Part shown: in pieces, positions 4,104 to 55,571 of the stretch | Position numbering within the stretch: position 1 is the first letter of the stretch | How the letters are laid out: each line of letters begins with the position of its first letter | From: Entomortierella parvispora E1425 | Lineage: Eukaryota > Fungi > Mortierellomycota | Length of the DNA stretch: 64,000 bases | Direction: 5' to 3' | Assembly (NCBI GenBank): GCA_020891255.1 | Contig: BQFW01000002.1 | Location: 434,001-498,000 of the forward strand | Translations under genes and position numbers: made by a program | Notes under the pieces: generated by a model | Told to the model about the DNA's origin: nothing | The model's database searches: none | Seen by the model: the letters and a program-made list of their open reading frames with translations, nothing else

Positions 4104-4701
4104 GGCTGATGGTACGTTGGTAATAGAAATGAGGCGCGAGTGAGACTGTCTAAAGAATGGCCCCACCGAGTTTCCAGGCTTGAACAGGCGGGCAGGATGG
4201 AATTCCGGTTCGAAGACGGAATGGCGAGTTGATGGGATGAAGCAGAGATGAGAAAGGATGGAAAAAAGTAATGGAGAGGCGCAAAAAAGGGCGCGGGCCA
4301 AAATAGCCCAACCTTGCACCGTTGTCGGGGCGTGGCAGAGCGATAATTTCGTTCAAACAGGGGCTCACAATTCATTTGAAAATGTTCACTCTGTCGGTTC
4401 CACCGTCCTCAGCGTTCGTCAGTCTTTGGTCATCTCTTCCTAGGTCAAGTTCGTTTCCAACTCTCGCCATGGACCTGTTGTCGTGGCGCGTCTCTAGTCC
4501 CGCCTCAGGCACCTCTTTCATTATTCAGCAAAGAGGGTATATATTCAATTTTAAACAGACAAAACAGACAAGCAGGATTCCAAGATGAGACCCCCCTATA
4601 CCCCCCCCCCCTAATACAGCCTCAAGAGTGGAGACTTCTGCAACCACGATGTGTCCATTCCACAGTTTCTGTATGGAGTGGGGAGGAGACCCAAGATGAA
4701 T

Positions 4702-7113: not shown

Positions 7114-9690
7114 ATGACTACACATCAGGGTGCAGTTGTGCCGCCTGGGTCTCCGAATCCCCCTTCGCCTCACAGTGGTTACCGGGAAAGAGGCCATGGT
7201 GAGCCACATCCCGGGGGCGGACATCCCTACCCATCCTACTACCACCACCACCCACCGCCGGCCCACCCTGGTGCTCACCACCACGGCCCTTCAGCACAGC
7301 CCTACTACCCTCCCTCATACCCGTCCTATTCCCATTCTTATCCCCACGGACATGGCCCCCCTCCGGTTCACGGGTACCCACCTGCGCAGCCAGGCTACGC
7401 CGCACACCCTCATCACCACCAGCAACCCCACGGCTACGGCGCACCCCCTCCTCACCACCCTCACCATCCCCAGCAGCACTACCCACCAGGTGAACATGCT
7501 GGCCCCAGTGCCGGGAGCCCCTCGCCGATTTCTGAAACCTTATCTGCTTCAGCCATCTCCTCGGCTTCAAAGTCCATCAAGGGCACCCCAAAGACTGCGA
7601 AACCCAAGGCCGGTCCAAAAACAAAGACCACTAAAGCACAGCAACAGGCTGAGCAAGGCTCGTCTGAAACCACCAAGGGCGCGTCCAAGGCCACCCCAAA
7701 GACCTTTCGCTTCGAGGGCAGTATCTCATCCGAGTCGTTCAAGAGCACAAAGTCCTTTGACCTGGCCGGCGTCAACATCTTGAACCGGAAACCTTTGGAT
7801 ACCAAGACGGCGCTGGACAAGCTGCAGCGACGCAGAGAGACCCACAACCGCGTGGAACGCAAGCGTCGAGATTGCATTAACCAGGTAAGGAGAATGGACA
7901 AACTGTCGGTAACGGACTGCTGTCCATTGTGCATCCCACTGCACATCCGGGATGCACTAACATCCCACGCGAGCATCCGCACTTATTAACACACGTTCTT
8001 ATCTTCTCCACAGTTGATTGATGATCTCACAAAGTTGCTGCCTGCAAAGCACCTCGAGGAAGCGAGCTCAAAGTGCCACCGCGTCAATGTCCTTCGAGGT
8101 GCCGTAGCCCACATCAAGTTCCTCAACGAGTCGAACCACGCTCTCAACCAGTCCCTCCGTGCATCCAGAGGAGAAGAGCCTTTGCCAGACCTGCCTACTG
8201 AGAGCGAGAGCGATCAGAAGGCCAAGGCTGCCATCAAGGACTCGGAAGATCGTGATATGTCCATGGATCTTGACAATGACACCGAGATGAAGGAGGAGGA
8301 GCAAGATGAAGAGGTTGTAGCGAGCCAACCCGGTGACACCATGTCCAGGTCAACAACTCCTGCGTCCTCACTCCAGGCTTCGCCGACGGCCTCTCCAAGG
8401 AGACCAGTGCCTCCTCCAGTGATCGTCACGAATGCGCCCACTTCCAGCGCCGCTGTTGATCCCTACAGTCTCGAGTCCCATCGCCAGCGGTCCAATTCGT
8501 TCACCACATCCGTGGGCGACGACCATAGTCCTAGGAGTGCTTACTCGTCCTCGCCGATGTTCCCTCCATCGCCGATCTCCCCGCTGCCTTTTGCTCGCAA
8601 TTCGCTCTTCCCTCCTTCTGAGAGCGAGTCCTCCAGGGATCCACAGCAGCTCTCGCCTCTGATGGGCCACCATTCGCCATCCTTGTCGCCGTCACTGCCA
8701 CCCATCTCTTCCTTGGCTAGCCTCCAGCTCAAGTCCCCTTCGGGTCGTATGAACGAGTCTTCGCACGAGCAGCCAAGCGTGGGCTCTAGCCCGGTGCCTT
8801 CGTCGTTCTCCAGCCGTCCTCACCGTGGAGCAAGCACGCTCCCTCCATTGACCATCCCTCAGCCGCACCATCTTCACCCCTCGTATCATCAAGGCTATTC
8901 AAACACTGGAGGTAACGGCAGCTCCACCTCTGGCAGTAACAGGAGTAGCTTGAATCTGTCTCCTCACCCTACAGACCAGCCACCAGTTTCGCCCTTCATG
9001 CTCTCGCCCATGTTGTCCCGCTCGCCGTCGATGGGACCCATCTCGTCCGCTTCTCCTGGTGGGTCGCCCTATCCTCACTGGCATCACGATGGCACCCCTT
9101 CACCCCAACCTTATCCTCCCCATGGATCTCCGTTCACATCTCCAGGAGCTTACCCTCAGGGGTATACGCCTAATGGTGGCGGCAGTAACAGTGACAACAG
9201 CAATCCAACCCACCCTCACCCTCATGCTCGCCACAAGTCTCTGCAGCCTGGACCCATCTTTATTCAAGAAGAGCCTTGGAACGTGCAGCGGAAACGTAGT
9301 ACCTCGAGTGCATCTGGAAAGAGCTCATCCAAAGCTTCCAGGACCCAAGAGAAACGAAAGGCCGATGAAGCTCCTGCAGAGAGCGGAGCTGTGTCCCCAA
9401 CTTCGTCCGTGACCTCCAGCGCCTCATATCCATCCAGTCCCAACCCCAAGAAACGAACTCAGCCTTCTCAGCGTTACGATGAAGGGGAGGGAAATGATGA
9501 CGAGGAAATGATCAAGCGAACCAAGCAACAAGAGCCCAGTAACAACCTTGACGCGACGACATCCCATCAGCGCGACAGTGGAGTCGTGGTCGTGGTCGAA
9601 GCCCCTCCAGAGGGTTCGGCCAAGACTGAAGTAGAAGCCCATGAAGATGCTGCCCAGGCACTGACTTCACTTTCGAGGACGGCTGCCTAA
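7114..9690 (+). CDS. bHLH transcription factor (2 exons: 7114-7884, 8014-9690)
   Basis: Basic region RRETHNRVERKRRDCINQ spliced (GTAAGG...CACAG) to LIDDLTKLLP...KCHRVNVLRGAVAHIKFL. His/Pro-rich N-terminus and Ser/Pro-rich C-terminus. Confidence 0.9.
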
Positions 9691-9955
9691 GGGCAATGAC
9701 TCTTCTTCTTCTTCCCCCCTTTACCCTACCATTGTGTCTCTTCTTTTGTAAATTTCTATTCTTGCCAACACAGCATCCTTTCAACCACTGTACCAATACG
9801 TAATAAAATAACCCCATTTTGAACTTTTATCATCTCCAACTGTCCAGACACTGACGGTATTGCTGTTGGATATGTTTATATTTTTAGTCGTATTGAGAAT
9901 TGGTCAGACTGGGTTGCATGAACGGCTTTTCGGCTGCCATGTCCTTGTCTAACCT

Positions 9956-10256
9956 CTATGAGGCAGAAGAATGACGTTGAATCAACTCTCGAATGCTTTT
10001 GACGACCAAGGTGTGGTCCTGGTCCTGTTTGAGTCCACTGACAACGATTGCGCCCACGCAACCGACGTTCTTGATCAGCAAAGGGAAACCGCCTCCATGA
10101 CAAGCGTAGTCTGTCATGGATACTCTGTACGATTGCTCCATCTCCTTTTGTCCTTTAGATGCCAAGCTTCTTCCAATGTAATATGACGAATGTTGGAGTC
10201 GAACGACCGTGTTGTTCTTCCGCCTCAACCAGTTTTCACTGTCAACGGTCGTGCCT

Positions 10257-10290
<34 letters not shown>

Positions 10291-10591
10291 GGAAAGAGAG
10301 CGGAGATTAGTTTGGATATTAGTTTGAGGAAACTCTCGGGGGTGTATGGAGGGTAAGAAACTTGAAGCCGATACCTTTCATGGCATACTGAAACAAGACT
10401 TGAGCATTTCGAGTGATGAGAATGGCGATACCCTGCCCGGGGTATTCCTTTTTGGCGTTCGCAACGAGGTCAGATCCGAGGATAAGGGCGTCATCGTTCG
10501 TGAATTGAGTGAATTGAAGCTCCTCCTCCTCTTCCAAAAGACCAGGCAGCAGTTTCCCTGCTTCCTCTTGTTCGTGAAGTGAGACGGCCAT
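9956..10591 (-). CDS. UPF0303 / HbpS-GlcG-like (DUF336) heme-binding-fold protein (exons 10591-10375, 10254-9956)
   Basis: LQFTQFTNDDALILG...VLFQYAMKG|TTVDSENWLRRKNNTVVRLQHSSYYIG...YACHGGGFPL...VGAIVVSGLKQDQDH. The spliced frame was checked. Confidence 0.85.
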
Positions 10592-13500
10592 GATGGTGTT
10601 GTGGTCAGATGTCGTGTGAAAATTATTTTGAGAGTTGGTGAGGGATCAGTGCGTCCTGAATTCCTGGGGGTTCCTGGACAGCGAGTGGGTGAGAGTAGAG
10701 TCTTGGGAGCGGTCGTGGGAATGATGATGAAAAGAGTAGAAAGGGCAGATACCATTGAAAAAAACAAAAAGATAACGATAATGACCCTTAATATAGCCCA
10801 ACGGCGGATGACGTGCCAAAAAACAAAAAAAAAAAATGCAGGAAACGCGCCACGCTTTGAAAACTACAAAAGCCAGAGTATGTTGCACCAAAGAGCCAAC
10901 GCACATGGACACAGCACGGAAATAAGTTGCCTAATCTTGAAATGACAATTGATCACGATATGGTACCTGCATTACACTTTACCCTGTTTTTGGGCTGAAG
11001 ACCCCCAATTTCCTGTTTCTCTCGCGACTGAAAACAGACTAGCATTCCAAATTGACTTTGCAACAACCCATTGAGTTGTTATTCACCTTGAGTCCTTCCT
11101 GGGAGGCTCGGAGCTAAGGGCTCGACTGAATCATCACATTCGTCCGCCCTCGTTTACAATCCATCTTCAGACATATCAACGAGGATGCGCAACGGCACTG
11201 CCTTTGGACACAAAAACACTGTCTGTCTGGGTTTCATCCTGGCCTCAACTTTTCGTGTGGCTCTAGCTCGGTCTTGTTCTCACGTCGCAAGTACTAACCG
11301 CCGGTGGATGTTCCATTCACCTCTCTTGCCAATTCTGACACATTGAGTCACGATCCTTTTCTTTTTTTTTATCGATTTTTTTTTGGGGGAAGGGCTGCAG
11401 CATTGCATGAGGACTACGCTTCAGGATTGCACGCGTGTGTGTGGTTCGGGGACATGGGGAAAGGAGAGAGAGATGCAAAGGTTAGGCAGGTCGGCTCACC
11501 TTGACGCGACGGTCCTTTGAATGGCGCCACGTTTAAAAGTCGACATTTTTTTTTCTCCATGGCAACTGATCCCTGCATCTTCCAGGCTACTTTTGTACCT
11601 GTGCTCGCACCACCTGTTCATATATTTTTTTTGTTTTCGAAAAGAGTGGGGTGAGGTGGGGAGGGCTCTTGCTTTTATTTTGATCTTTCGTTGGTGCCTA
11701 GGCGCGCTGACGTTGCCCCTTTTATCTTTCGATCGTGATTCTTTCCTTTTGTGGAGAGACTTTGCTGGGTTTTGCGTTAATTGCCTTGGGCGGACAAGAA
11801 CTTCGAGAGCACTTTTGTTTATGTCCTCTTGCATGGTCTGTTTGTTTGTGTGCGCAATGGCTCATGTTGTTGTTGGGGAGTTGAATAACCATCATTGTGG
11901 AGATGGCGAAAAGTGTCCACTTTCTGCCAGATCCCTAGTTGTCGACCGTCCTCAATATGGAGAGCGCTTTTCTTCGCGTTCGAATGAAGAGACAGAAAAA
12001 CAAAAGAGGGACAACAAGGTTGCAGTAACAATGACGAACATTGAATTTGGCCTTTTGGATTATTGGAGCTATTGAGTTTTCACGTCTTGAAAAAGAAAAC
12101 TCAATGACAAAAAAATTCTCCGGATGGGAACAATTGTTGTAAGTATGGTGTGGGGTATTGACCACTATCCTCTCTTCCCTTTAGAGTACTACCGTACTTA
12201 CTGCACCTTCTGCCGTCGCTCCTCTCGACATACGAGTCGATGAAAGACCATTCTGTTCCAAACTGGACGAAACTGCCCGAGGAAACGCTAACCTTGCTGC
12301 CCCGGCTGAGATGTCTCGAAAGTTTTTTTTTCTTTACATTTCGCCCACAGCACCGGCTCGCGAACATATGAGCATGTTGTTGTTATTGTTGTTGTGGATG
12401 GTCGATGTGGGAGAAGGGACACGCGACGAGATGAGAGCGGTCCCTGCCCGTATTGTTTTCCTGGCAAAAATATCCTTCCGAATTTGCTCGTGATAAAGAC
12501 AGAGGCCGAGAGACCGTCTTTGTTGACGAGCTCACATTTCTCTCCTATCTCCTCGTCCATGGACAGGGTTCTTTACGATTGGAGAAGTATTTCCGAGAAG
12601 GGAGCAGCCGTGTATCAATCCAGGAAGAAAACAACTCCCAAGGTGTCAAAAGGTTTTTTAGGTCGGATCGTGTTTCGTCGGGAAGAGAGGAGGTCCCAGA
12701 AGAGAGTCAGCTAAGCTCAAATTTCTCGGCTGACGTTTCTCCTCCCTTTCCTTTTTCCTTTCCCCCCTGTGCATTTGAGTTTCCTCCTTTCATTTGTGGG
12801 AACACAATTTCCTCTCATGCAACAGTGAGGTGAGGATGATCAACGAAGGAATGTCTCTGTAGTTCAGAGCCAAAAAACCTGAAGACAGGGACGCGCGAAC
12901 ACGCGGTCTTTTTGTTTACAAACACGTTTGCTAAAAGATCCCTTCTATCAGATTCTTGGAGCGTGCTGAGATCGTCTGGCAAATAGATGAGGGAACAGAG
13001 AATATATAGATTGAAGGTATGATGAAGCCATTGCAATGAAAGAGTTGAACAAAAAAAACATATTACTCAACCCTTGTTTTTACTTTTTTTGACAGGTGCC
13101 AGTCAGGCTGTCAACCCTTGCAGAGGAGAAACAGTATAAGGACATTGACCTTCAACTTAAAAAAAACCCCGTCAGCTTCCACGGTTTTATGTTCTCCCTT
13201 TTTGGACTTTTGCCTTTTCTCCTCACTTTTTTGCCTTTTTTGATGACCTCTCTTCAATTGATTGGATCTATCTTTGTCATCTCTTCTCTCATGGTCTTTG
13301 TTTTGTTTGCCACGTAAACGACACAATGGGCAGTAGGGGGACTTTGAAGGAGTTGAAATGATTTCGTAACCAATTTTACCTGGGCCATTGACTGAGGTAC
13401 TCTCCGCCGCTACTTGCAGATCCGCAGCAGAACAATCGATGGGGATAAGAGTCCAGAGAGAGAGAGAAATCTTTCCGTTCGCACGGTGCAAAAGGGCCTT

Positions 13501-41060: not shown

Positions 41061-42805
41061 TTACTACAGCAATGACCAAAGGAGCAAGGAGTAATGGTTA
41101 GCCTCAGTGTCAATTCAAAAATAACGAAACATAAAAAAATATAGCAAAACTTACAGCAGCAGCCTTGACACGCTGAGCAGCACGCTTGCCGGTTTGGGCT
41201 TGGAAACCAGACTTGATGGCAGAGACGGATCTCGTGGAACCGCAAGCCTCGCACTGCAAGAAGAACAAACGGTTCTCCTTGGTCAAAATGGTGTCGGGAG
41301 ATTTGCAAGTCTTGCAGGTCACATACTCAACAATGTAACGACGCAAGACGGCCTCAATCTGCTTCTGCTGGAAGCGACCCTTGATGACCAAACGCTGGGA
41401 TCCATCAATCGATCCCGAAGTTCCCAATTCAGCAAACAAGAACTGAATAACGTGCTCGGGCTGACGATGCATTCTCTTGCAGATATCGGCAACGTTGGCA
41501 AAGACAGTCTTCTTGTTACCGTCACGCATGACCGAGGGAGGAACAATGGTGTAACGCTTCTTCTCACCGGCCAACTCGGGGTTGTTCTGACGAAGGATCT
41601 TGAAGACACGCGACAAGAGCTATACCGAATATAAAAGATGTGAGTTAAATGAAATCAAACCTGTCGTCACTATATTGGTCACGTCGGCGACACACGCGCT
41701 GGGAAGATCCTGAGTATTTACCTCGGTATATGTGTAATCACGGTTGGTTCCAATCCAGCCCTCCTCGGCCTCGGCGCCAGACTTGGCAGCAGAGCGCGAG
41801 CCGTCCTCATCATCGGCAGCAAAGACATCATCGGGGTCACGAGCACCACCATCCTCGCCCTCCTGCTCCTGACCATCCTCGAAAGCAGAGAAGTCGACCT
41901 TCTTGGACTTCTTCTTCTTCTTCTTCATGTCACCAAAGTCGAATGACTCGCCTTCAGCAGCAGGCTCCTCACCGCCCTCAGCAGTCTCGTCCTAAAGTTA
42001 TTTCATTTTGGAGTGGAGAGTTAGCAGCAAGCTTGGAGCAATAGATCAGATGCAGCATGGCTGCTTTCGCAAATTCCAGGCGATTGCAATGGGTCACATT
42101 ATGTTCCAAATCTGTACGTACCTCGGTCTTGACCTTTTTCTTCTTCTTCTTCTTTTCGCCAAACATGGCCATGGGGTCTTCCTCAGCAGCATCTAATTTT
42201 GAGGAGAGCTGTCATCGTTAGTAATTATGACTAATTTTCTTGTATGACTTGATCCACTTGCTGCGGCTGCAAATTTTTATCTCTTTGCAATGGCAACGAC
42301 TATCAAAGCTGTCGTGGTGAATGGCTTCGATTGTTTAAAAAAGAAGTGTTGTAATTTACCAGTAGCAGGGGCAGCCTCCTGGGCTTCGGCGGTCTCCTCA
42401 ACAGCCTCCTCTTCAGTCTTCTTGGACTTTTTCTTCTTCTTCTTCATGCTCAGGTCGAACACGAGCTAATACAGGTAGTTACAGTAGGGTAATATGAAGC
42501 GTGTGAGTGACTAGAAACAAGGAAATGGGGCAGCGTTCGGTCAAATGTAGTGATGAACGAAGCACGGCATAGATCATGACAGGCATGATCGTGCTTGGTA
42601 ACAAGGAGGGAGATTCTGGAGAAAGTGGCTGAAATGCTGCCCATTGAATGATCTACAGCAAAACCAGCGTGTAATGCACAGACGGGCGTAGTCTGCACAC
42701 AGAAAAGGGGTGTGTTGCTGTTGATCCTGTTTGGATGAAGGAATGGCGCCTTACTTCGTCGTCCTGGATCTCCATGGACTCGAGTTTCTCTTCGATTTCA
42801 GACAT
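41061..42805 (-). CDS. SUI3: Translation initiation factor eIF2 beta subunit (multi-exon; last exon is the stop codon only)
   Basis: Three poly-Lys boxes, [48 protein letters not shown] and the zinc ribbon CKTCKSPDT...CEACGS. Confidence 0.97.
42543..42721 (-). ncRNA. Candidate intronic H/ACA snoRNA in eIF2-beta intron 1
   Basis: On the sense strand, ACAGCAA/TTGCTGT forms a lower stem, followed by an internal pocket and an upper stem GTGTGCAGAC/GTCTGTGCATTACAC. H box AGATCA lies 14 nt after the upper stem. A second hairpin (AGCACG-ATCATG/CATGAT-CGTGCT) is followed by ACA-TTT. The second hairpin lacks a clear lower stem. Confidence 0.35.
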
Positions 42806-42926
42806 GATGGATATGGTTGAGATGGTAGAATGGATGCGGTGATCTGTGATGCTGAATCTATTTTGTCTGCTCGAGAACGAGGCGCAGATTTCCACGTGAT
42901 GTGATTGAGGGGCGTGGTGACTCGTG

Positions 42927-42935
42927 ACTTTGTCC
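42927..42935 (+). repeat. Left 9-bp TSD of the AcademH-type element (ACTTTGTCC)
   Basis: The right copy is split by the MULE: ACTTTGTC at 49827-49834 plus C at 54514. It is also read intact at 54506-54514. Confidence 0.9.
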
Positions 42936-43190
42936 TAGGCTCGACCCAGCCCTCTCTCCTCACCACGTGACCGCCGCAGGTGGTCATGTCCTCGTAGAGG
43001 GGCTGGCGGCAAATGTGGCCCTTTACATAGGATGAATATAAAAGGAAGGTGCTTAAGGGTTGTCATTAAGGGTTTGTCGATCTGGGTCACATCGCTGTCG
43101 GTTGTCGAATCACAACGCCTCCCAACGATTCACCTTGTCACATTCCTTCCCCACATGTCATCCCATTCCTGACATGCCTTCCGTTTTCTT
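42936..43190 (+). repeat. Left TIR (255 bp)
   Basis: Reverse complement of 49572-49826 with one mismatch (T at 43158). Confidence 0.96.
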
Positions 43191-43324
43191 ATGTTCCCTT
43201 TCTTTCCCTCCCTTTCTTTCCTTCCCATACCATCCGTTGTCTTCCATGTCTTTCACAGTATTATTTTCCATCAGCCTCTTTTATTAAATTCTTACAAAAG
43301 TAGCACCAATTGACCAGGCGACAA

Positions 43325-44933
43325 ATGGACACATTAAATCCCTCCGACGTTAATCCCTCCTTCAACATTCAGGAGATCCCCAACAATGCAATGGAGCTTT
43401 GCTGGAATCAATTCGGGTTCCGACTAAAGAGCGAGCAGTTGCAAGTAACGAAATCCATTGGTCATGGAAAGGACATTGTTCTCATTGCTGCATGCGGCTG
43501 GGGCAAGTCGCTGGTGTTCTTCTTGCCGTTGTTGTTCTGGGACCGAGGTGTTATTGTTATTGTGTCTCCGTTGCGAGCTGTCATGAAGGAGCAGCATGGA
43601 AAACTGGAAAGCCTTGGTATTAGAAGTCTATGCCTCTTAGGCGGTGGAGACCAGTCAATCAATCCCGGTGAAATTGCCAAGCTTGCCGCTGGTGTCTTCC
43701 GAGCAGTTTTCATGACACCAGAAGTCATTTTCGAGAACGACTTGGTGGAGGAACTCTGGTCCAGTCCACGGTGGCACTATCAGCTACGTGCAGTTGTCCT
43801 TGATGAGGCCCACTGCATCCACACCTGGGCAAAATTCAGGAAAAACTACTCAAAGCTCGGACTATTACGCCCTCGGCTCCCACCTCATGTTGCTTTCGTA
43901 GCAATGTCTGCCACTCTGCCCCCACACGTTCTTCATACAGTCAAGGCATCCCTCAACCTTGCACTCAATGTCCCAGTCATTAATACCGGCAATGACAGGC
44001 CCAATGTGAAGCTCATGGTGATGCGGACTCATTCACCACAGGCCATCACTCTCGAATTTCTCCTGACGGACCAGAGGAAAAACCATTGTCTATTTTGAGT
44101 TGATTCGGGATCTACACAAAGCACATAAGCACCTGCTCAACCTCTCCGGACCAAATGGCCAGTTTGCAAGTTACTTTGCCATCTTGTCTGACGAATACAA
44201 GTCTGACACTATGGAGAAGTTCAGGAGGGGTGAAGTTCGAGTCCTTTTCGCTTCCGACGCGGTCGGAATGGGCTGTGATATCAGTGATGTTGATTGTGTT
44301 ATACAGTTTGGAGTTCCGGATTCTGTCTTATCGCTTGTTCAGCGACTTGGACGTGCGGCGCGAAGCCCCGATATGCAAGGATATGGCATTGTATACTGTA
44401 CACTCAAGCAACAATATGCCAAGCACGAGGACGTACAGCTTAATGAATTCCTGGCGACAAAGACATGTCGTCGACAGGTTCTTAACAACATATTTCGCAA
44501 TGCTCCCCGAGTTATTGCCGAAAACTGCTGCGATATTTGTAAAAAGGATTATCACGCTGCTGGACTACCACCATTTACCTCTCGCCGAAACAAGCCTCTT
44601 CCACCCATCCGCAAGGGCGAGTTACTTGACTACGAGGAGAGGGCTGCTCTAGGAAAGGCGCTAAAGAAATGGCGTAAAGGGATTTACGATGAGATTGTTC
44701 TTACCACCTTCTTGCAGTTCAAACCCGAGGTGTTGCTATCCGACGATTGCATTATGAAGCTTATCAAGAGAGCTCCCAGAATTTTACGGGCAGAAGACGT
44801 GAAGGAAACCCTCGTCGGTTGGTCTCCTTGGAAACCAAGCCACTTCAAGGAGCTTTCTGATCTCGTTCAGGATACAGTACGGAAAACTCGTTCCGAGGTG
44901 GCTCGGCTTATGTCTGAAAGCTGGGACCACTGA
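43325..44933 (+). pseudogene. Transposon-borne RecQ-family helicase with a 1-nt frameshift at 44078-44082
   Basis: Walker A AACGWGKS, VIVSPLRAVM, VLDEAHC, AMSAT, GNDRPNV. Removing one A gives RKTIVYFE, then VLFASDAVGMGCD, VQRLGRAAR and the RQC zinc motif CRRQVL...NCCDIC. Confidence 0.88.
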
Positions 44934-45117
44934 CATAGATCAGCAATTAGATGGGGTAGTCAGCCCATGATACCAACGTACCATAACCAACATAATGTAC
45001 CCTGACCCACGGTTCATACTGACTATGCCCTCGTATGAAGAGCTCTTCAGCACTGCAATCCCGCAATAAACATTAATTAGTTTCCTGCTCCTCTACTCGG
45101 AGGCAAGAGCAGTAAGT

Positions 45118-47476
45118 TTATTGAAAAGGATCATCTGGAGCATCTTCATCCTCATCCTCGTTGTCATCTAATGTCCCTGTTTTTTTAAAATTATCAATTC
45201 TCGATTCAACCAAGAGTGCCAGGCCACAGGCATACAGATCCTTGTCCAAAGCTATCTCGAAATCAGGGTCCCCGGCACTAAAATCTTCGCTCAGAATATT
45301 GCACTGGCGAAATTTCAACACGAGCTGATTTATATCCTTCTCTGCTGAGACAGCTGAATGGTAACTTGAGTTGTGGGTCCGATTGAAGCATTCGTCAAAC
45401 TGTTTCCTAATTGCCTCAAAGGTGCGGATGTTGACCGATATCGATGACTCTCGCGTATCCCACTTTGAGTTGCTCCCTTTCAACTCAAAGGTAGCCTTCA
45501 TTATTTTGTTGTTGTGTTCCTGATACATGTCGGTCGGAATCCATCCATTTTCTTTGCCCTTAGTGTTAACTAACCAAGTTGCCATGAATCTTCTCTTCAT
45601 TTCGGGGGTCAATGTATATCGGATGGCACAATGAACACGCAACAGCTCCAGGGCATAGTTATTGTTGATGCCATTTTGAAACATGATCGTGATCCATCTC
45701 AGCGACTCCTCAATCCTGCCAACGTCGCCGGCTCTGATTGCTGCGCGGAGCTCGAAGTAGTAAAGCAGGTGTCGAAGAAGGAGGGCCATGTTCCTGTTTG
45801 TACGGCTGTGATAAAGCAGTTCATCTTGATCTGGCGATATGAGATCGTTCACAATGTGTCCGACCTTCTCTGCTACAATCTCCTGCAGCTGATCACTGCT
45901 CATCCCTTCAGCAGCCACTGGTAGATCTACGAGATAGACTTCCCAAACTCGTATGACGATCGCCTCAAATGTGTGTTCCAGGAGTTCGTGCGCAGCGTGG
46001 AAATCAAAATCTTTCAGGCTGACCCGCTTCCGCTTCAGAAAAACTGTGTTGAAATGTAACGACCCTGGCTGAATTGCTAAACCCCAATGAGTTTGGAGAA
46101 TGAGGCCACAGAACGCCATCTCCAGATGAAAAAGCTGTAACCAAGGCATTGCGAACTGTAATCGATGAAATGGTGAGACATCGACTGCCTTGTACTCCAT
46201 TGCCGTCGAGATCCTGCTGATGGTAAGCTGGTCGCCTGCAACTAGGATTTTTCGATTGTCGTCGAACCACGCCTGAGGTAGTCGAAGCGTCTTCTCCATA
46301 ATGGTATTGAGCACCTCCAGGTTTCCGGCGACGCTTGACTGATCAATATGCATTGAAGGCAATGGGTGAGCGACGGTTTTCACTGTGGCTAGTTTGTCTC
46401 GTGCTGGATCTGACTTGCGGCAGCAATCATAGCCCTTGGATGACCGAGCAAGAACCTTTAGTAGAGCGTTCTCCGTGACAGCCTGCATGTGCCCGTAGCT
46501 GTCAGCGCCAGGTATGAGGTCTGAGAGGCAAAGTCGGTGGTATGATAGCCGGATATCATCACGGCTAATCGTCTCATCCATCATCACAACTGTAGCCATG
46601 GTGCCACTCTCAAATGAGTCAGAATTGTCGATCCGCTGGTCCGATTTTCGACTCGCAAAGTTGATGTTGTCATAGACAAGATACCAAGGCTTGTCAACCA
46701 CAGCCTTACGAATCTTCTCCAGCGCGGCATCCGTCATTCCTATGGTGCGTGCAGCGTTATAGCGATCGTTAAGATTACGAAAATATCAATGGCACAGGCG
46801 CTTTCAAGTACGATTCATGGGAGGTTCAGAAACACCTACCCTTGAGAGCACGCAAAACTGAGGTGTGCGACACAGAGATTGAAGCCTTGGACAGAAGGTG
46901 AACCACGGCACTTGGACTTCCACAGCTGTAAAGGTAGAGGCCCATCATCATTTGGAAATGATTCGACTTCTGGCTCCGAAGAAAGAGGAGAACGCTACAT
47001 ATCATCACAATCGTGGAAGCCGATTTCTTGACGCTGTTGACAGAGGCAAGTCCTTTTATAACTTCAAGAACAGTTGGAGCGCAGGCCTCGATGTGTTGTT
47101 GAATGAAGTCAAGCTCGAATGTTTGGAGTTTGTCGAGGTCGATCGCGTTTGCTGGATGTCGAAGTTCCTCAACTTTGGACAAACGGTTGAGTTCTGCACC
47201 TCCATTTTTGACGACGATGGCCGTGACAGCCTTGTTGAATGATTTATCCTTGTTCGTTGCTGCCCAAATGCCGACAACCTCTGCTGCCCCGCCGTCCCGA
47301 TAGAAATAGGTCAACACCTTTTCAGTGCCTGGATGAGTCGAATTGAACAAAGTTCGCAAGGCAGCTAATAATGGGACCTGATGCCTCTCCAGTTGTCCGA
47401 TGAATTCGAAAACAATCTCTTGAACAGACAGGCTTTCAACGAACTGGAATGGTCGCTTCGTTGGTGAAGGATTCAT
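45118..47476 (-). CDS. Academ-type DDE transposase, intact 752 aa (exons 47476-46840, 46739-45118)
   Basis: A phase-1 intron joins LRALKG|MTDAAL. Motifs: LVYDNINF (D), VAGDQLT (D), LFHLEMA, IPTDMYQEHNNK (E). No stops or frameshifts were found. Confidence 0.82.
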
Positions 47477-47610
47477 TTTGCGAAAGACGAGGGCTCAACA
47501 ACAGGTGTTTGCGTAAGGCAGAATGTCGATGGAGTGAAGTTCGAAGCTTGAGAAAACGATGAAAGGAGGAGAGCGCTTCATGGAAGACATGAAATGAGAG
47601 CGGACGTTAC

Positions 47611-47730
47611 GGGAAGGCATGGGAAGATAGCGTATGGCACAGGACGGCCTGGGAAGACAAGGGACGGCATAGGAAGACAAGAGACGGCATAGAAAGACAA
47701 GGGACGGCATAGGAAGACAAGGGACGACAT
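47611..47730. repeat. About 20-bp tandem repeat (GGGACGGCATAGGAAGACAA), 5-6 degenerate copies
   Basis: Visible periodicity inside the element, upstream of the transposase start. Confidence 0.8.
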
Positions 47731-47879
47731 GGGAGGGAGAAAGGTTCAGTGTTCGAGAATTGGACGTGCGACCATCGACAAGAAGTTGAGTCGTGCGGCC
47801 TGCACTCCGTGTCCAGGGACTTCTCTTTTCGTCTCGGGCGCCGCCCACCTCTTCCTTTCATATCCTCTTCGCTTTGTCC

Positions 47880-47972
47880 TCGTTTTGTTCTTCGCCCTGT
47901 TCTTCGCCTTGTTCTTCGCTTCGTCCTTCGCTTTGTCCTTCACCTTGTTCTTCGCCTTGGTGTTCGCATTGT
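47880..47972. repeat. 12-bp tandem repeat (TTGTTCTTCGCC-like)
   Basis: Gives the AKNK-type periodic peptide in the 47746-47991 minus ORF. Confidence 0.7.
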
Positions 47973-48051
47973 TCCTCGTCTCAACCTTCATTCTGAATGA
48001 ATGAAATCAGCTCTGTCCAGCACCCCTTTGATCGGGCACTGTTTTCACACG

Positions 48052-48353
48052 CACTGTCCCCCTTTGTTCCCATATGATTTTGTTGCGTACTGTTTGCATA
48101 CGCGCCAGGACTCACTGTCCCCCCTTTGTTCCCATGTGATTTTTGTTGCGTACTGTTTGCATACGCGCCAGGACTCACTGTCCTCCCTTTGTTCCCATGT
48201 GATTTTGTTGCGTACTGTTTGCATACGCGCCAGGACTCACTGGCCCCCCTTTATTCCCATGCGATTTTGTTGCGTACTGTTTGCATACGCGCCAGGACTC
48301 ACTGGCCCCCCTTTATTCCCATGCGATTTTGTTGCGTACTGTTTGCATACGCG
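48052..48353. repeat. 61-63-bp tandem minisatellite, about 4.9 copies
   Basis: Unit CACTG(T/G)CCCCCTTT(G/A)TTCCCAT..GATTTTGTTGCGTACTGTTTGCATACGCGCCAGGACT starting at about 48052, 48113, 48176, 48238 and 48300. A partial sixth copy lies near 48393-48413. Confidence 0.95.
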
Positions 48354-48620
48354 ACAATTGTTCATGTGTCAGTGCCTCTTTGATCACGCACTCTTTGCAT
48401 ACGCGCCAGCACTATTCTCGTTCGCGCACTGACATCAAGCCCAACAATGCGCCGTGGACCGCTTTGTGTGCCTTCGATACTTGATCGCATTCCCAATTGC
48501 AAAAACATACTTAAAGGGGATGATACGCTCTCATTTTTCTCTATTTTCCTCATCAATTCTCTTCTCCACACCGCAGACAGCATCACTTCACCTCCATCTT
48601 TCATCAAGCGCAAAAACATC

Positions 48621-49543
48621 ATGCCCAAGCCCATTGAATTCAGTGTTACTATCACCATTCCCAAGGGTGATGTTAAGATTCAATTCTTCGCACACGTATG
48701 CGTCTGCGGGAGGGATTTCTCGAGATCTCAAACTCTACAGGACCACATTGAAGGGCGCAAGCTCCAAAAGGCATGTACTCTCATCAAGCCCCTGTTGATA
48801 CAAGAGTTATCGGAGAAAAATATCCATGTGGTACCAAAGTTTTACTCCGCCACACTGTTGCCCAAGCCAGCTTCAGAACCGGTACGTCGTGTTGATGACA
48901 AATGGATTAATGCGAGTTCGCATCATATACTGTAATGTAGATTTTAACGCCATGTCTTTTTATTTTTTGTCTCCTGTGGCATTTGTAGTCACCTACTTCA
49001 ACTCTGGCTGTTTCATCGCCCCCTTCTACTTCCGCCACACTTGGCACTAGTGAGCAGTACAGACCACCTACGGATCAAGAATCAAAGACACAACATCTAG
49101 TCGTGGATCTCTTCAGGAAGCTCAACGAGAAAGTGGATTCAAATACTGCGGATTTTTCGCGTCGACTGCAATCTTTGGACAACATGACCTATCAAATGCA
49201 CGAGAGGTTATCAGGTTTTGTTAGCATTCATGAGAAAACCGAGAGGTGGATTTCAAGCTCTACTTCCAGTTCTCTTGCACAGCACCAGTACAATTCGAAA
49301 ATGAAATCTGATCCAAGGGGGCCCAGCCCTAGGGAGACCAGTCCCTATCATCAAGCACGAAGTCCTTCTAGGCCCTCTGTTGGCTCCAGCGGCTCTAGTG
49401 GCCCCCCCAGCTTCGCAGATATTGAGACGAGCACGCCTCGACCAGAAGTACTACAGGCCGACCGAGTGTGGGCTGCAATTCGGGAAGAGGAACAAAAACA
49501 ACTAGAAGGAGGGTTTTCACATCAAGTAATATATTCTGACTAA
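48621..49543 (+). CDS. Third gene inside the AcademH element: about 250-aa protein with a C2H2/C2HC-like finger, coiled coil and Ser/Pro-rich tail
   Basis: MPKPIEF...CVCGRDFSRSQTLQDHIEGRKLQKAC. Donor CCG|GTACGT at 48882 and acceptor CAG at 49055-49057 join in frame to the 49103-49543 ORF (DLFRKLNEKVDSNTADFSRRLQSLD). Confidence 0.5.
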
Positions 49544-49571
49544 ATTTTGACACATGACAAAGGAAAGACAG

Positions 49572-49826
49572 AAGAAAACGGAAGGCATGTCAGGAATGGG
49601 ATGGCATGTGGGGAAGGAATGTGACAAGGTGAATCGTTGGGAGGCGTTGTGATTCGACAACCGACAGCGATGTGACCCAGATCGACAAACCCTTAATGAC
49701 AACCCTTAAGCACCTTCCTTTTATATTCATCCTATGTAAAGGGCCACATTTGCCGCCAGCCCCTCTACGAGGACATGACCACCTGCGGCGGTCACGTGGT
49801 GAGGAGAGAGGGCTGGGTCGAGCCTA
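49572..49826 (-). repeat. Right TIR (255 bp)
   Basis: 254/255 identity to the left TIR in inverted orientation. Confidence 0.96.
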
Positions 49827-49834
49827 ACTTTGTC
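49826..49834 (+). repeat. Left 9-bp TSD of the MULE (AACTTTGTC)
   Basis: Exact copy at 54505-54513. The bases outside the two copies differ. Confidence 0.9.
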
Positions 49835-50065
49835 GAGGATACTTCTTCACCCCCCAAAAGTGGCGTTTAGGCCCGGGAGGGACTTCGTCACGTGGAGTAT
49901 ATGGCCTTGCACTTATAGAATTGCAAGGATATAACGATAATGGTAGGATATAACGTACTCTCACGTGATATCTACACGTGACAACATACGTCTGTTGCGT
50001 ACGGGGGCAGGCTTGAGGGGCGCTGTGCGGGATATGGCAATCCTAGGTGACGAGTGAGAATCAGA

Positions 50066-50215
50066 CTAAGGGTCGCCGTGCTGGCCTCTGTCAGTATCGA
50101 TCAATGTGGAATAAGACGGATCATGTATTGGTAATAATAAATAATGAGAGGGCTGCTACCTAAGGGTCGCCGTGCTGGCCTCTGTCAGTATCGATCAATG
50201 TGGAATAAGACGGAT
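50066..50215 (+). repeat. 56-bp perfect direct repeat, 2 copies (50066-50121, 50160-50215)
   Basis: CTAAGGGTCGCCGTGCTGGCCTCTGTCAGTATCGATCAATGTGGAATAAGACGGAT occurs twice, 94 bp apart. Confidence 0.95.
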
Positions 50216-51291
50216 AAAGAGCAGAGGGCCACGCCGTGCGAGCAACTACATATAGTGGTTCTACTTAAGGGTGTATCGTACCGTCCTGGCCATCAACACG
50301 TCATTTAGTCACGTGGATTTATATTGTCTGCCCAAATAGGAAGGAGTCTCGATCACCCCACAAAGTATAGGGAGACATGTCCGAAAAACAACATCGTTCT
50401 ATGTGAAGTCATTCAAATCGTATCAGAATGCCATGATTGTTAGCAATATCGATAGATATGATAAAAATACACCTCTCAAGTGATCGCGAGCAGTTTTGAA
50501 CAAGTTTGAGAGCGTGTTCATCTTCGTTGTGCTTATTTTGACTGAAAATGACGAGGGTGTTCGCTATGTTTTGGCTAGTTACCATTGTATATTCAATTAC
50601 AACACCACTTTCTTCCACATACATCCAAAACTTTCAGAATCCATGCCCTTTCCAATGTACATACTGTGAATGCGCTTTATTCGGTCAACACGCCTCGAAA
50701 AAAAGAACTTCACTTAGGAGCAAAGTGATCGACTTGGAAAAAAAATAGAATTTTGATGCATCTGAGGACATTTGTCTCGACTTTCCATGGTCAGAATTGC
50801 AACAATTGGGCTGAAAGCACTTTCCTGAGGTGGCCACACATTGTACGAAGAACGTAGTATCGTTTTCCTGCCAAAGAACGATTCCTCTAGAGGGCAATTG
50901 GATGAGTCATTCAAAGTAAAATGAACTTCTGACTACAATTTTACAGTAGTAATGCCTCAGCATGATGACAAGCTCTTGGCTGTTTTCCAAAGAAGTACTA
51001 TTCATAGGCAGGTGTCGCGATATACATGTTATTAAAAGTTGGAAGAGGTTTGGCTTCCGGATTCAGAGCTATCATGGTTCCTGAGATAGAGATATTGCTG
51101 CCATTTTATTTGTTTTTTTAAAAAAAAGAGCTCCCAGAAGGAGTATTTCCTCAGGAAACCCTGGGCCATAGGAACAGCAACCGAGATTGCATCAGAACTT
51201 GCGAAAGAACACTGCCAAATCATATGGTTGAACTATGATCGATCATGTCGCATCGAAGATAGAGTGGGCTGTGTGTTTATTACATTATTAT

Positions 51292-54166
51292 TTAGAAGAC
51301 TTGTCTACGTTTGTGTACGGCATTGAAGTGTAGAGGAGCTCTATTAACCATCTGACCAATACACAACGTTGTCTGTTGCAAAATGGAGGTGATGTCCTCC
51401 ATCTCCTTGTCATCTTTGCTTTGCACGAGGCTAGATAGGATGTTGATCTGCTCTAGAGCTTTAAGCCTCCACTTCGCGGCCTCTCGTTGCAGATGCCTCC
51501 GTTCTTCATCTTCGTCGTCCCCTGTTACTATTGATTCTGTCCCTCCCAAAACGACAGCAGCCGTTTCTTCTCCAGGCTCAATGCCAGCCAATAGCTTGTC
51601 CTTAGTGTCCTTTGACTCTGGAAGCACAATAGTTGTCATGGACCCATGAAAGTTGTTGTCAACTGGTAGTTGAATGTTTGGAAACATGAGGGTAGCAGCA
51701 ATGATATGTTTGCAAGGCTGAAGACGGCGCTTGAAGTCAGGGCACTCACAGGCCCGAATTGTGGGTGGATATGTCGTATGAATTGCAGTGATCTCGTACT
51801 CACTCCCATCAGACTTATCAAACGAGGTAATCCAGAGACGGTTCGAAAGGGTGTCATGTCGGAAGAGCTGGAGCCTTTGTTGAGCGGTCAAGTTCCTGAA
51901 ACGACGCTGCACAGAAATCAATCGATCCTGATATTCTTTTGTATTTTTTGATTGCCGTCCGAGGTTCAACGTAGCTGTGTTGATAATACTCTGGAAGTAT
52001 TCGACGACAGCACCAGAGAGTACATTGATCACAGTGTCAAGCCGGGGACTCTTGTTGTCTCGCAGGAACTTCGATTTCAGTTGACTGTGCCAGCTCTCCA
52101 CATAGTTGTTGGTGTTGATGTCGGCCCAATATACATCACTCCGGTATGCGCGCATCCACTGTTCTCGCTTCTCCAGAGTAAAGCTGGTAGTGTCAAGGTA
52201 TTCGAGGACTTCCGTGTAAGCACTGTCTAGCGTTAGAGCCTGGCGAAGGCTTTGCTGGAGTAGAGAGGCCTGGTCGGGATCTTGAGTGTACATCATACGG
52301 CGCAACATCTTGAAGATCACCTCGCGGGATTTGTCATACTGACGCTTTAGTTGTGCCTTCTCGTCTTTGTTCTTGCCGGTCATATCTGGATGGATCTTGC
52401 CAGGGAGAGCTCGAGCCCATGCGCGCTGAACGTGCCAGAGGCAGAGCTGAATCTTGACATCATCGAAGGCATAGTTGATGGCATTCTTCTCGATGTAGCT
52501 GTCGTCAACCACAATTGTTTTCACAATGCAATACGGCTTGTTTGACCCTTCTTGAACCATGAGTTGGCACCGCACATGACTCAGCCAAAGGCTAAGAGCC
52601 GAAGCTGACATATCACTCGTAAGAAAAAAAGCTACTGGTATTCCTTTTCCAGAGGAGTGCGCAACCACAATTGTGTAAAGTTGCGTGTTGTCATGACGGG
52701 TTGTTCCATGGGTGGCATCAATGCTAAAGCCAGCGCCGAATTGTTGCAGCATCTTCCGCTGCCAAGGGGATATAAATCCAAATCCAAACCGTTCCTTGGG
52801 ACCAGTCTTGGCAGTTGGCGGTTCAATTGGCTGTTTATCGGGTGCAACGGATTCAATAAAAGCAGCCAATCGACCCTGCTCGAGATTTAGGCCGACAGCC
52901 ATTTTCTCAATGAGTGCAAAAGCCACTCTGTCTGATGTAGGAGTGGGATTCTTACCACGGGCAGGTTTCCGAGGAGCGTCTCGTTTCATTCGACCATTAT
53001 CCACCAAGATATCCCTTCCCCCAAAACTGCTGGAAGAAGACCAAGCACCATCAGGTGCCTCATCGTATTCAAACACGGAGAACCCCTGTTCTCGCAATTT
53101 CGTTCCCCACAGACGCATAGATATTCTCTCATCTTGGTCAAGCTGAGAAGTAATCCGTTGGCGACGAATGTCTATATTATAGATGTCTTCCTTCGTGATG
53201 GCCCTATCTCTAGCACACTGAATATCGAATTGCGACTTGTCCTCCGGCGGCGCTTTCGAAAGCTTTTCATAGATGAACCGACGAGAGTGTCCTGCATCGA
53301 GCATCCTCTCAACCTGTTCCCTTCGCCATTTGGACAGGCGACAATGCCTGATATTCTCGATGGAATTCGTTTGGTGCCCTGTATGGTACGGTCTGTATGT
53401 AACAACGGCCTCTTCTGAGTTCTTGTAATACTTGACGAGAACGTATGACTTACAGCCAACCTTGCCACTGATCTTTTGACGCGGACGCTTCTTGAGTACA
53501 TTCTCTGGAAAATCATCTTGGGTGGGGTCCTCTTTAAGGCTGCAGTCGCTGTCTGTACTAGAGTTGTCGTCTTCTGCTTTAACCTTGGTAGCCGAGCTGC
53601 CCTGTCGCCGGCGCTTCTTAGGGGGTACCAGCGTGCTGGCAGAAGTATCTGACGGAGCATTCGAGGGAGGACTTCGTACTCTTCGACTTCCTCTCCTCCT
53701 TCTTCAGGTATTTGGTTGAAGCAAGACGCCCCTGTTCAAACAGCCAGGGAATGACCATCGATTTGTCCATGCGCTTTTCGATTAGTCGGTTGTGATTAGG
53801 ATGCCGCGGAAGGAGGCCCCCGAAAACCTTGGTCCACAAAGGAACAGGAGCTTCCTGGTCGTTCGGGGGTTCGACGGGTATCTCCAAGTTCTCAGTAACT
53901 TCCGATGAAGACACTGAGGCCGGGTATTCGACATCCTGAGCAGCCTCCTGGATATCCTCATCCTCATTGTCGCTGGAGTCCGAGGATTTATCTGAGAAGA
54001 AGCAGACTTCAAATGCAGGGTCTTCAACGACTGATGGGGTGACAGGGCAATCCTGTGGGGCCACATAGGTCTAACAGGAAGACAAAAGTGTGTCGATATC
54101 ATTAGTATCCACATATCTCAATTAGCCTACTGCGAGACATGCCATGCCATACCATACCTCTTCCAT
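51292..54166 (-). pseudogene. MULE transposase with WRKY/GCM1-like DNA-binding domain, DDE core and SWIM finger; interrupted by CCC-TAA at 53623-53618
   Basis: Exon 1 MEE (54166-54158) spliced to TYVAPQD. In the +1 frame after the stop: SGKVGCKSYV...YHTGH, FSIDATHG, IVVDDS, LCLWHVQRAW, TNNYVESWHSQLK, CECPDFKRRLQPCKHI. Confidence 0.88.
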
Positions 54167-54441
54167 GTTGCAGGACTATATCGCGTAAGGGCCTCGCGTT
54201 GCCTGGTGAATGGAACGTGTTAATTCAGGTTGCATTTCTTCTCTAATTCTTTTTGTTGATCCGTCCTTCAATAGAGCTACAGCCTACCTGGCAACGCTAC
54301 TGTTGTCTGGGGTATGAGGGGAGGGTGAGGGGAGGGTAAGGGAAGAAGCAAAGGTGTTGTGAGGGACGGTCAGGAACGTTTGTTTTTGTGCATTGTGATG
54401 ACGTGCTGATTTTGTGCACTAAGGGAGAACTCAGGTCAATG

Positions 54442-54467
54442 CACGTGATGGCACGTGGTGGCACGTG
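54442..54467. promoter_or_regulatory. Three CACGTG motifs at exact 10-bp spacing in the MULE subterminal/promoter region
   Basis: GCACGTGATG GCACGTGGTG GCACGTGATA. Confidence 0.5.
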
Positions 54468-54504
54468 ATATTTGGTGGCAATGTTTTTATGGGGGGCACA
54501 TATC

Positions 54505-54513
54505 AACTTTGTC
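54505..54513 (+). repeat. Right 9-bp TSD of the MULE (AACTTTGTC)
   Basis: Identical to 49826-49834. Confidence 0.9.
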
Positions 54514-54738
54514 CTTAATGTCACGTGCTTCGCGGACCCCACCGGCCATGCGACAAACGTCCTTAGCCTCACGCCCTCCCAGCAACATCGGAAGCGCTAC
54601 ATAGACAGACACACACTCTTCACAGGGATCCTAAGATACCTGACAATAAACTGCAAAAATGATTTTTATGATCTATGATATTGTACAAACTACTTCCTGG
54701 CTATGATCTAACTCGTGGACGCTCATTTCTAGGGCTGT

Positions 54739-55571
54739 TTACTTTCTGTTACGAGCGTAGAACTCATAGGCAAGAGCGTGCATCTGTGGTGGGAAAGGAC
54801 TTGGGATCTCAGTCTTTCCTGGGCGAGAGATGGGAGAGCGAAGGAAACAGGTCGAGCAAGTGTTGTAGTTAACCTCCAGGTAATCAGGGACGAAAAGGAA
54901 AGGCTGAGAGTAAGGTGCGGGGACGAACTCCATGCCTGACTTGTCAGCAGCAGCCTCCTCGCCTTCCTCAGTAGCAGTGGATTTGGTCTTCTTCAGAGTA
55001 GAGACAGCTTTGGGGTCCACTGTGATGATATCTCCATCCGTGACACGGTGGGAGGGGAAAGGCATCTAAATAGCAGATCGGATTGACATTGGTTAAAATC
55101 CAGAGTCCGTGTTTTGGTAGGTATCACTCTAGTAGATCAATTAACAATCCCTTCTAGCAGTCGACTTACGGTCTTTCCATTGATGGTGACCTTTCCGTGG
55201 CCAACAAGCTGACGGGCAGCATAGATACTGGGTGCAAAGTTGCTTCTGAACACGATGAAATCCAGGCGACGCTCCATCTCAGCAAAGGTCAAAGAGAAAA
55301 CTGGAGGATGGGGCTCGACACCTCCGACCTTGGTGTTAGCAGTAGGAAGGCGGGTTTTGAACATGGACTGCCATTGACGTTCCGTGATCTGATCTCCATG
55401 GTAGGCACGGGTATCCTTCTTCGCAGCCCACTTTTGCTGGTACAGAGTTTTGTTGGCATTGTTGACGGTTCTGGTGCGCTGAGTCAAGTTGAAGAGGTTG
55501 TACTTGTTCCAGGACATGCGCAACATCTGTCTACGCAGGGAAAAGTTGGGGATCGTGGCATTGCGGACCAT
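54739..55571 (-). CDS. NAM9: Mitochondrial ribosomal protein uS4m (2 exons)
   Basis: [39 protein letters not shown]4 domain [34 protein letters not shown], and [20 protein letters not shown]. Confidence 0.92.

Follow-up and report, generated by a model that had tools for sequence, protein, structure and literature searches.

A 64-kb stretch of the Entomortierella parvispora genome (BQFW01000002.1:434001-498000, from the single assembly GCA_020891255.1; hereafter the window) carries two unrelated transposons, an Academ element and a MULE, standing end to end on target sites that lie one base apart. The stack is probably the outcome of two independent cut-and-paste insertions in one intergenic region, in which the MULE was positioned by a CACGTG box and not by the Academ element. 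Judging from nine reconstructed sites in this assembly, the MULE family appears to follow a spacing rule, its target lying 7-8 nt from a CACGTG or CACATG box. The features that define the stack, in window coordinates, are the following.

42927-42935: left copy of the Academ target-site duplication, ACTTTGTCC (direct reading).
42936-49826: AcademH family A transposon of 6,891 bp, TAGG...CCTA, with ends TAGGCTCG...CGAGCCTA (direct reading and other copies).
49826-49834: left copy of the 9-bp MULE duplication, AACTTTGTC, made up of the last Academ base and 8 nt of the Academ right duplication.
49827-49834: shared 8-mer ACTTTGTC, between the Academ end and the MULE start.
49835-54504, minus strand: MULE copy of 4,670 bp (boundaries from eight other copies).
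54498-54504: MULE tip with a 7-bp deletion relative to the canonical GATTTACCTTATGTG; the minus strand reads GA+TATGTG.
54505-54513: right copy of the MULE duplication, AACTTTGTC, followed by C (direct reading).
54506-54514: right copy of the Academ duplication, ACTTTGTCC, complete only after removal of the MULE.
54522-54527: CACGTG E-box, the proposed guide for the MULE, whose target is 8 nt away (Academ target, 7 nt).

The footprints of the two elements overlap at 8 of 9 bases. Of only five occurrences of the shared 8-mer ACTTTGTC in the window, three are exactly at junctions. If the Academ element inserted first, both duplications are perfect (9/9) and no mutation is needed: when the MULE is excised together with one copy of its duplication, ACTTTGTCC is restored. 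If the MULE inserted first, its duplication would be GACTTTGTC versus AACTTTGTC and that of the Academ element ACTTTGTCC versus ACTTTGTCG, which requires two substitutions. Since the elements are nearly without substitutions between copies, the Academ-first order is well supported. The first-pass annotation of this DNA had proposed the same order, together with the junction coordinates, the two element classes, the 9-bp length of both duplications, the make-up of the MULE duplication, the restoration of ACTTTGTCC and the 1-nt offset between the MULE staggered cut and the Academ end. All of these were borne out, the junctions by direct reading of the sequence, the classes by domain matches (DUF6589 and DEAD/Helicase_C for Academ, MULE and SWIM for the MULE) and the duplication length by the other copies as well.

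Nested or adjacent transposon insertions have been ordered by means of their target duplications, for example the nested elements of maize intergenic DNA. Stacked insertions are ordinary, and reading their order from nested duplications is routine. As in nested insertions, the duplication of the later element here includes part of the earlier one, which fixes the order. Unlike in nested insertions, the later cut is only one base off the earlier cut, and neither element is interrupted.

Neither element has a second copy inside the window, and other copies were taken from elsewhere in the same genome. For the MULE, a 90% protein cluster comprised eight sequences on nine loci, and the eight loci other than the window are referred to as L001-L008. 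All eight other copies have 100% identical ends; on one side they are homologous up to the base that corresponds to window 49835, and their opposite end is canonically GATTTACCTTATGTG. Therefore AACTTTGTC is flanking sequence; the first-pass annotation had pointed out that different ends in other copies would have made it part of the element. A caveat concerns the boundary at 54504: given the 7-bp tip deletion, it is placed from the terminal GA, which this copy has kept, and from the flanking repeat, which is perfect (9/9). Canonical copies measure 4,366-4,367 bp, and there are nine copies in the genome.

MULE duplications are perfect and 9 bp long at 7 of the 9 reconstructed sites; five of the loci L001-L008 carry perfect 9-bp duplications of unrelated sequence. 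At L006 the duplication is 8 or 9 bp (one-base ambiguity), and one recombined site matches at 8/9. The duplication length of the family is 9 bp. The recombined sites belong to L001 and L008 (BQFW01000003.1, ~1.40 Mb and 1.12 Mb), which lie in opposite orientation ~285 kb apart with their flanks exchanged, AGGCGAGAC standing to the left of one copy and to the right of the other. When these flanks are re-paired, one perfect duplication and one of 8/9 are obtained. The swap implies that the two copies recombined and thereby inverted ~285 kb, or else that the assembly is flipped here.

The spacing rule was derived from the nine rebuilt empty sites, with spacing counted as the number of nucleotides outside the 9-bp duplication. 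At three sites, exactly 8 nt separate the duplication from a CACGTG box: the window (spacer 54514-54521), L007, and the site re-paired from the left flank of L001 and the right flank of L008. CACATG lies at 8 nt at the reciprocal site (left flank of L008, right flank of L001) and at 7 nt at L005. Thus 5 of 9 MULE sites have one of the two boxes at 7-8 nt, which is the fixed single-nucleotide distance that characterizes motif-tethered integration. The box is found on either side of the MULE, without orientation bias. Expected frequencies were taken from 171 kb of non-element sequence of the same genome. For the strict pattern, the per-site frequency was 2.65e-4 and the probability of 3 or more sites in 9 was 1.6e-9; for the loose pattern, the corresponding values were 1.3e-3 and 5e-13 (5 or more of 9). 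When every 6-mer was scanned without bias at offsets 0-30, CACGTG at offset 8 was the only combination present in three sites. Both MULE ends were also searched in metagenome contigs for further insertion sites, and none was found there.

The same motif is concentrated in the element itself. The background density of CACGTG in the genome is 0.15 per kb. The canonical MULE contains seven such boxes, none further than 170 bp from an end, and its central 4 kb is free of them: three stand at 45, 55 and 65 nt from one tip, and four at 54-165 nt from the other. Together, the spacing rule and these CACGTG-packed subterminal regions suggest that the protein binding the MULE ends probably also reads genomic boxes.

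We propose that the locus arose in two steps. Insertion of the AcademH element would have duplicated ACTTTGTCC; the MULE would then have inserted through a 9-bp staggered cut one base over, duplicating the terminal A of Academ plus ACTTTGTC. The box at 54522-54527 would set the position of the MULE, which would accordingly be the same with or without the Academ element. As both targets lie beside the same box, their footprints overlap at 8 of 9 bases. A protein assembling on the MULE ends would probably also dock the transposition complex beside genomic boxes. Candidates for this protein are a host E-box factor and the MULE transposase itself, which might bind by means of a weak FAR1/WRKY-like zinc finger at its N-terminus. 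The match of the transposase to the FAR1 DNA-binding domain (residues ~141-232) is indeed weak (PF03101, E 0.015; 16.4 bits against a cutoff of 28.1), and comparison of the transposase N-terminus with PDB sequences gave noise only and no match. For the Academ element, whose target is 7 nt from this box, the landing site may reflect chance or a general preference for box edges in promoters of this kind, which would act as a shared hotspot. The data show the structure of the stack, its boundaries, the order of insertion and the MULE spacing rule, and the nature of the box-reading protein and the reason for the Academ position are inferred.

Several points weigh against this explanation. The sample comprises nine MULE sites only, of which four lack a box at a distance of 7-8 nt. 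The rule was spotted by eye ahead of testing. The box accounts for the position of the MULE, but not for the presence of an Academ end within one base of it, and among the 9 AcademH sites a box at 7-8 nt is present in only 1. By a rough estimate that allows for shared promoter preferences, a MULE picking uniformly among thousands of boxes would rarely choose the one flanked by Academ. The residual coincidence is of the order of 1e-3 to 1e-2, and a scan of many windows would be expected to turn up such a rare case.

To explain the stack, the first-pass annotation had offered an extreme insertion hotspot, MULE targeting of Academ ends, or a composite unit. The hotspot is supported, in sharper form, for the MULE, whose targets lie 7-8 nt from a box at 5 of 9 sites, with a box present here; the guidance of Academ by the E-box, which was considered separately, is not supported, as the eight other AcademH sites have no box at that distance. 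A more general hotspot at box edges overlaps with our preferred explanation and differs from it in the motif reader and in whether Academ was guided. Here a host protein sitting on CACGTG and on other rare promoter motifs would distort or expose the adjacent DNA, and AcademH, MULE and a long terminal repeat (LTR) retrotransposon would all integrate a few bases away. This would account for the Academ and MULE targets at 7 and 8 nt from one box, for a solo LTR inside the MULE at 8 and 7 nt from two boxes, and for another copy of this LTR, at L001, lying 0-5 nt away from the MULE target and beside a cluster of boxes. It would also fit the CCCTTAA motifs that bracket the L004 MULE site at 9 and 10 nt, and the motif CCCTTAAGTTT found at 14-15 nt in 2 of 3 Academ-A sites. 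However, 8 of 9 AcademH sites are without a box at 7-8 nt, and no box comes closer than 13-18 nt to the second LTR copy. The crowding of boxes in the MULE ends speaks for an element-specific reader, and the numbers are very small. We consider such a general hotspot unlikely.

Homing of the MULE to AcademH ends, through the end sequence, a bound Academ transposase or the structure of the junction, is improbable. It draws on two of the nine MULE copies lying within 150 nt of an AcademH end, one in the window with its 1-nt offset and one at L011/L003, where a family-B element is 147 nt away. However, this second case (L011:4918-9448, the same place as L003) involves a family with different ends, with no CACGTG and no junction, and the remaining seven copies have no Academ nearby. 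Moreover, the position in the window is already predicted by the box 8 nt away, and a common preference for short intergenic regions near translation-related genes raises the chance of proximity. Independent landings without any targeting, in the few tolerated bases of a short intergenic region, would suit the small size of the empty region (only ~355 bp) and the number of windows scanned, some coincidences being expected. Yet the MULE spacing rule is far beyond chance, and the 1-nt offset within 355 bp is itself a ~1% event before the shared choice of region is counted; we consider pure coincidence improbable. Finally, we regard as extremely improbable that the 11.6-kb block moves as one unit or results from an assembly mis-join of two repeats. 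It is true that ACTTTGTCC flanks the whole block and that both elements have several copies of ~99.9% identity, a situation in which assemblers can go wrong. However, the ten other copies of both families (two Academ-A and eight MULE) stand alone, each with its own duplication and none joined, which refutes a composite unit. A mis-join is very unlikely: such an error would not leave two perfect, nested duplications of 9 bp with outer halves that agree over a distance of 11.6 kb, the private marks of this MULE (the 7-bp tip deletion and the solo LTR) are continuous with the flanks, and the public record BQFW01000002.1 is identical to window 35164-57476 over 22.3 kb, though it is the same assembly.

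The coding regions of the two elements are as follows.

43325-44933, plus strand: Academ helicase gene (DEAD and Helicase_C; domain matches).
45164-47476, minus strand: Academ transposase gene EMPS_01013 (Pfam DUF6589, E 2e-92; domain match).
51292-54166, minus strand: MULE transposase gene (MULE, ZSWIM RNaseH-like and SWIM domains; domain matches), 928 aa in intact copies.

The MULE transposase has a DDE domain (PF10551, 37.9 bits, cutoff 27.6), and also matches PF21056 and the SWIM zinc finger. The open reading frame in the window is 99% identical to EMPS_00235 of Entomortierella parvispora, and is split by an extra C in a C-run at ~53625, which could be an assembly indel. The terminal inverted repeats (TIRs) of the MULE match in register at 15 of 27 terminal bases, including the GA and a C6 run. 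The family is young and probably active.

In the Academ element, the DUF6589 gene faces the helicase gene, and the TIRs (42936-43194 and 49568-49826) are 259 bp long and 99% complementary. Thus the transposase gene and a superfamily-2 helicase gene lie within one TIR-bounded unit, as in AcademH; the assignment is based on the Pfam DUF6589 match and on the gene pair. A 12-bp tandem array (47868-47987) and five copies of a 62-bp tandem repeat (48016-48356) stand between the transposase gene and an annotated 271-aa gene of unknown function (48621-49543). Family A has three copies in the genome (a DUF6589 cluster of three members), which are 99.8-99.9% identical and differ nearly exclusively by single-base indels. 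The two other copies stop at the same TAGGCTCG and CGAGCCTA bases as the window copy and have 9-bp duplications of their own, CTTGGGGGA at L012 (element at 5653-12542) and ATCTTTCAG at L013 (5127-12012). Relative to these two copies, an extra A at 44078 causes a frameshift in the window helicase gene, which could again be an assembly indel. Indeed, single-base homopolymer indels are nearly the only differences among copies of both the Academ and MULE families (window 44078 and 53625; L012, L013 and L006-L008). Several of them break reading frames, and they may be long-read assembly errors rather than real defects.

Two further AcademH families share the transposase and helicase layout of family A: family B (6.25 kb, TIRs of ~555 bp, four copies) and family C (7.6 kb, TIRs of ~1.15 kb, two copies). 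Over the three families, 9-bp duplications are perfect at 8 of 9 sites, and the remaining site has 8 bp. These lengths agree with the 9-10 bp stated for AcademH in PMC10045372. The elements described here also resemble AcademH (Kojima 2020, as summarized in PMC10045372 and PMC10799480) in their transposase and DEAD/Helicase_C genes within a TIR-bounded unit, in their 9-bp duplications and in a low copy number in Mucoromycota. The 259-bp TIRs, and the position of 2 of 3 copies 14-15 nt from CCCTTAAGTTT, are features of family A itself.

The surroundings of the Academ and MULE targets contain other motifs and elements, two of which lie in the window.

42893-42898: CACGTG E-box in the left flank, 28 nt from the Academ target.
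49993-50298: solo LTR of 306 bp (TGTTG...CAACA) with the 4-bp duplication CGTC; it sits in the subterminal part of the MULE and has a CACGTG box on either side, at 8 nt and 7 nt.

CACGTG is also found 28 nt inside each Academ tip (42964-42969 and 49793-49798). The promoter side therefore regains a box at a similar distance after Academ insertion, which may be a coincidence. The left flank was also considered as a relic Academ end and rejected: its in-register identity of 20/45 is driven mostly by the common CACGTG, ~0.5% of background windows score as high, and local alignments were trivial. In both other Academ-A copies, the 11-mer CCCTTAAGTTT lies 14-15 nt outside the duplication (L012:12567, L013:5093), with P ~7e-8 for its 7-mer core. 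The Academ-A TIR contains CCCTTAAG and CCCTTAAT, and the window copy has only CCTTAATGT, overlapping its duplication. In family C, the 15-mer TTTTGGTGGCGCACA flanks both copies on the same side (L015:16264, L016:16264), exactly 7 nt further out than the duplication, and the 16 nt between element and motif differ between the copies. On the strength of these two loci, the pattern looks like site-specific integration beside a repeated motif.

A solo LTR 100% identical to that in the window MULE was found at L001:4336-4641. It lies beside three CACGTG boxes and one CACATG, and forms a second stack of unrelated elements with the MULE. The placements of the solo LTR give hints that motif edges are favoured in general. 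No E-box is present at the L004 MULE site (4620-4655 and 9022-9060), which has a bZIP gene on one side and a Myb gene on the other; the CCCTTAA motif that brackets this site is rare, with a density of 0.06-0.075 per kb. At L006, the MULE may adjoin the end of a hAT element; the inverted-repeat search there was dominated by poly-A/T. One could imagine that short rare promoter motifs (CACGTG, CCCTTAA(GTTT) and the 15-mer at Academ-C) serve as nucleotide-precise landing marks for several unrelated transposon families, with superfamilies piling up within a base or two; among eukaryotic DNA transposons, the MULE would then be the first found to read a motif of transcription-factor type that its own ends also contain. 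We put this forward tentatively, and think it somewhat doubtful.

Once both elements are removed, the host site is an intergenic stretch of ~355 bp between two annotated genes, with the Academ element and the MULE both inside.

41061-42805, minus strand: eIF-5/eIF-2B-domain gene (annotated), whose 5' start faces the stacked elements.
54739-55571, minus strand: S4-domain gene (annotated), whose 3' end faces the stacked elements.

The stack lies ~120 bp upstream of the eIF-5/eIF-2B-domain gene. Translation-related neighbours are also present elsewhere: a ribosomal L37ae gene is 99 bp from the Academ element at L012, a Brix gene lies by L010, and a ribosomal S17e gene lies by the MULE at L002. 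At L006 (9022-9142), the 3' end of a tRNA-Val is 46 bp from the MULE end, and a second tRNA-Val follows 130 bp further on. AcademH and MULE families are thus both found in short intergenic regions beside translation-related genes, which amounts to a small shared pool of sites and makes the one-base spacing in the window less surprising.

Preference for promoter-proximal DNA is known from related elements. In maize, a mere 1.9% of the genome receives 85% of new Mu insertions, with hotspots at gene 5' ends (bioRxiv 10.64898/2026.05.18.725947). The E. parvispora MULE resembles maize Mu and other MULEs in its MULE and SWIM transposase, its 9-bp duplications and its promoter-proximal intergenic insertion. 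Unlike in maize Mu, its preference is for a fixed distance of 7-8 nt from a 6-bp motif that is repeated in its own subterminal regions; its poor TIRs (15/27 matches) also set it apart. A closer parallel for the spacing is the Tf1 retrotransposon of fission yeast, which, according to PMC5741268 (citing Hickey 2015 and Jacobs 2015), integrates at -9 and +19 of Sap1 sites. Both systems have single-nucleotide insertion peaks next to the promoter motif of a DNA-binding protein. However, Tf1 is an LTR retrotransposon with an integrase and a known host reader, Sap1, whereas the element described here is a DNA transposon with a putative reader. No MULE with a motif-spaced target rule was found in a literature search, whose coverage was incomplete. 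The E-box-spaced MULE target looks like a new form of targeted integration.

The stack itself is a tidy textbook case of insertion order read from duplications, and changes nothing; the useful result is the spacing rule. If it holds on a larger sample, it would offer a simple experimental system for single-base target choice by a cut-and-paste transposase, and it points to a DNA-binding module with a possible use in guided insertion. It would also explain the build-up of transposons at the promoters of translation-related genes in this compact genome.

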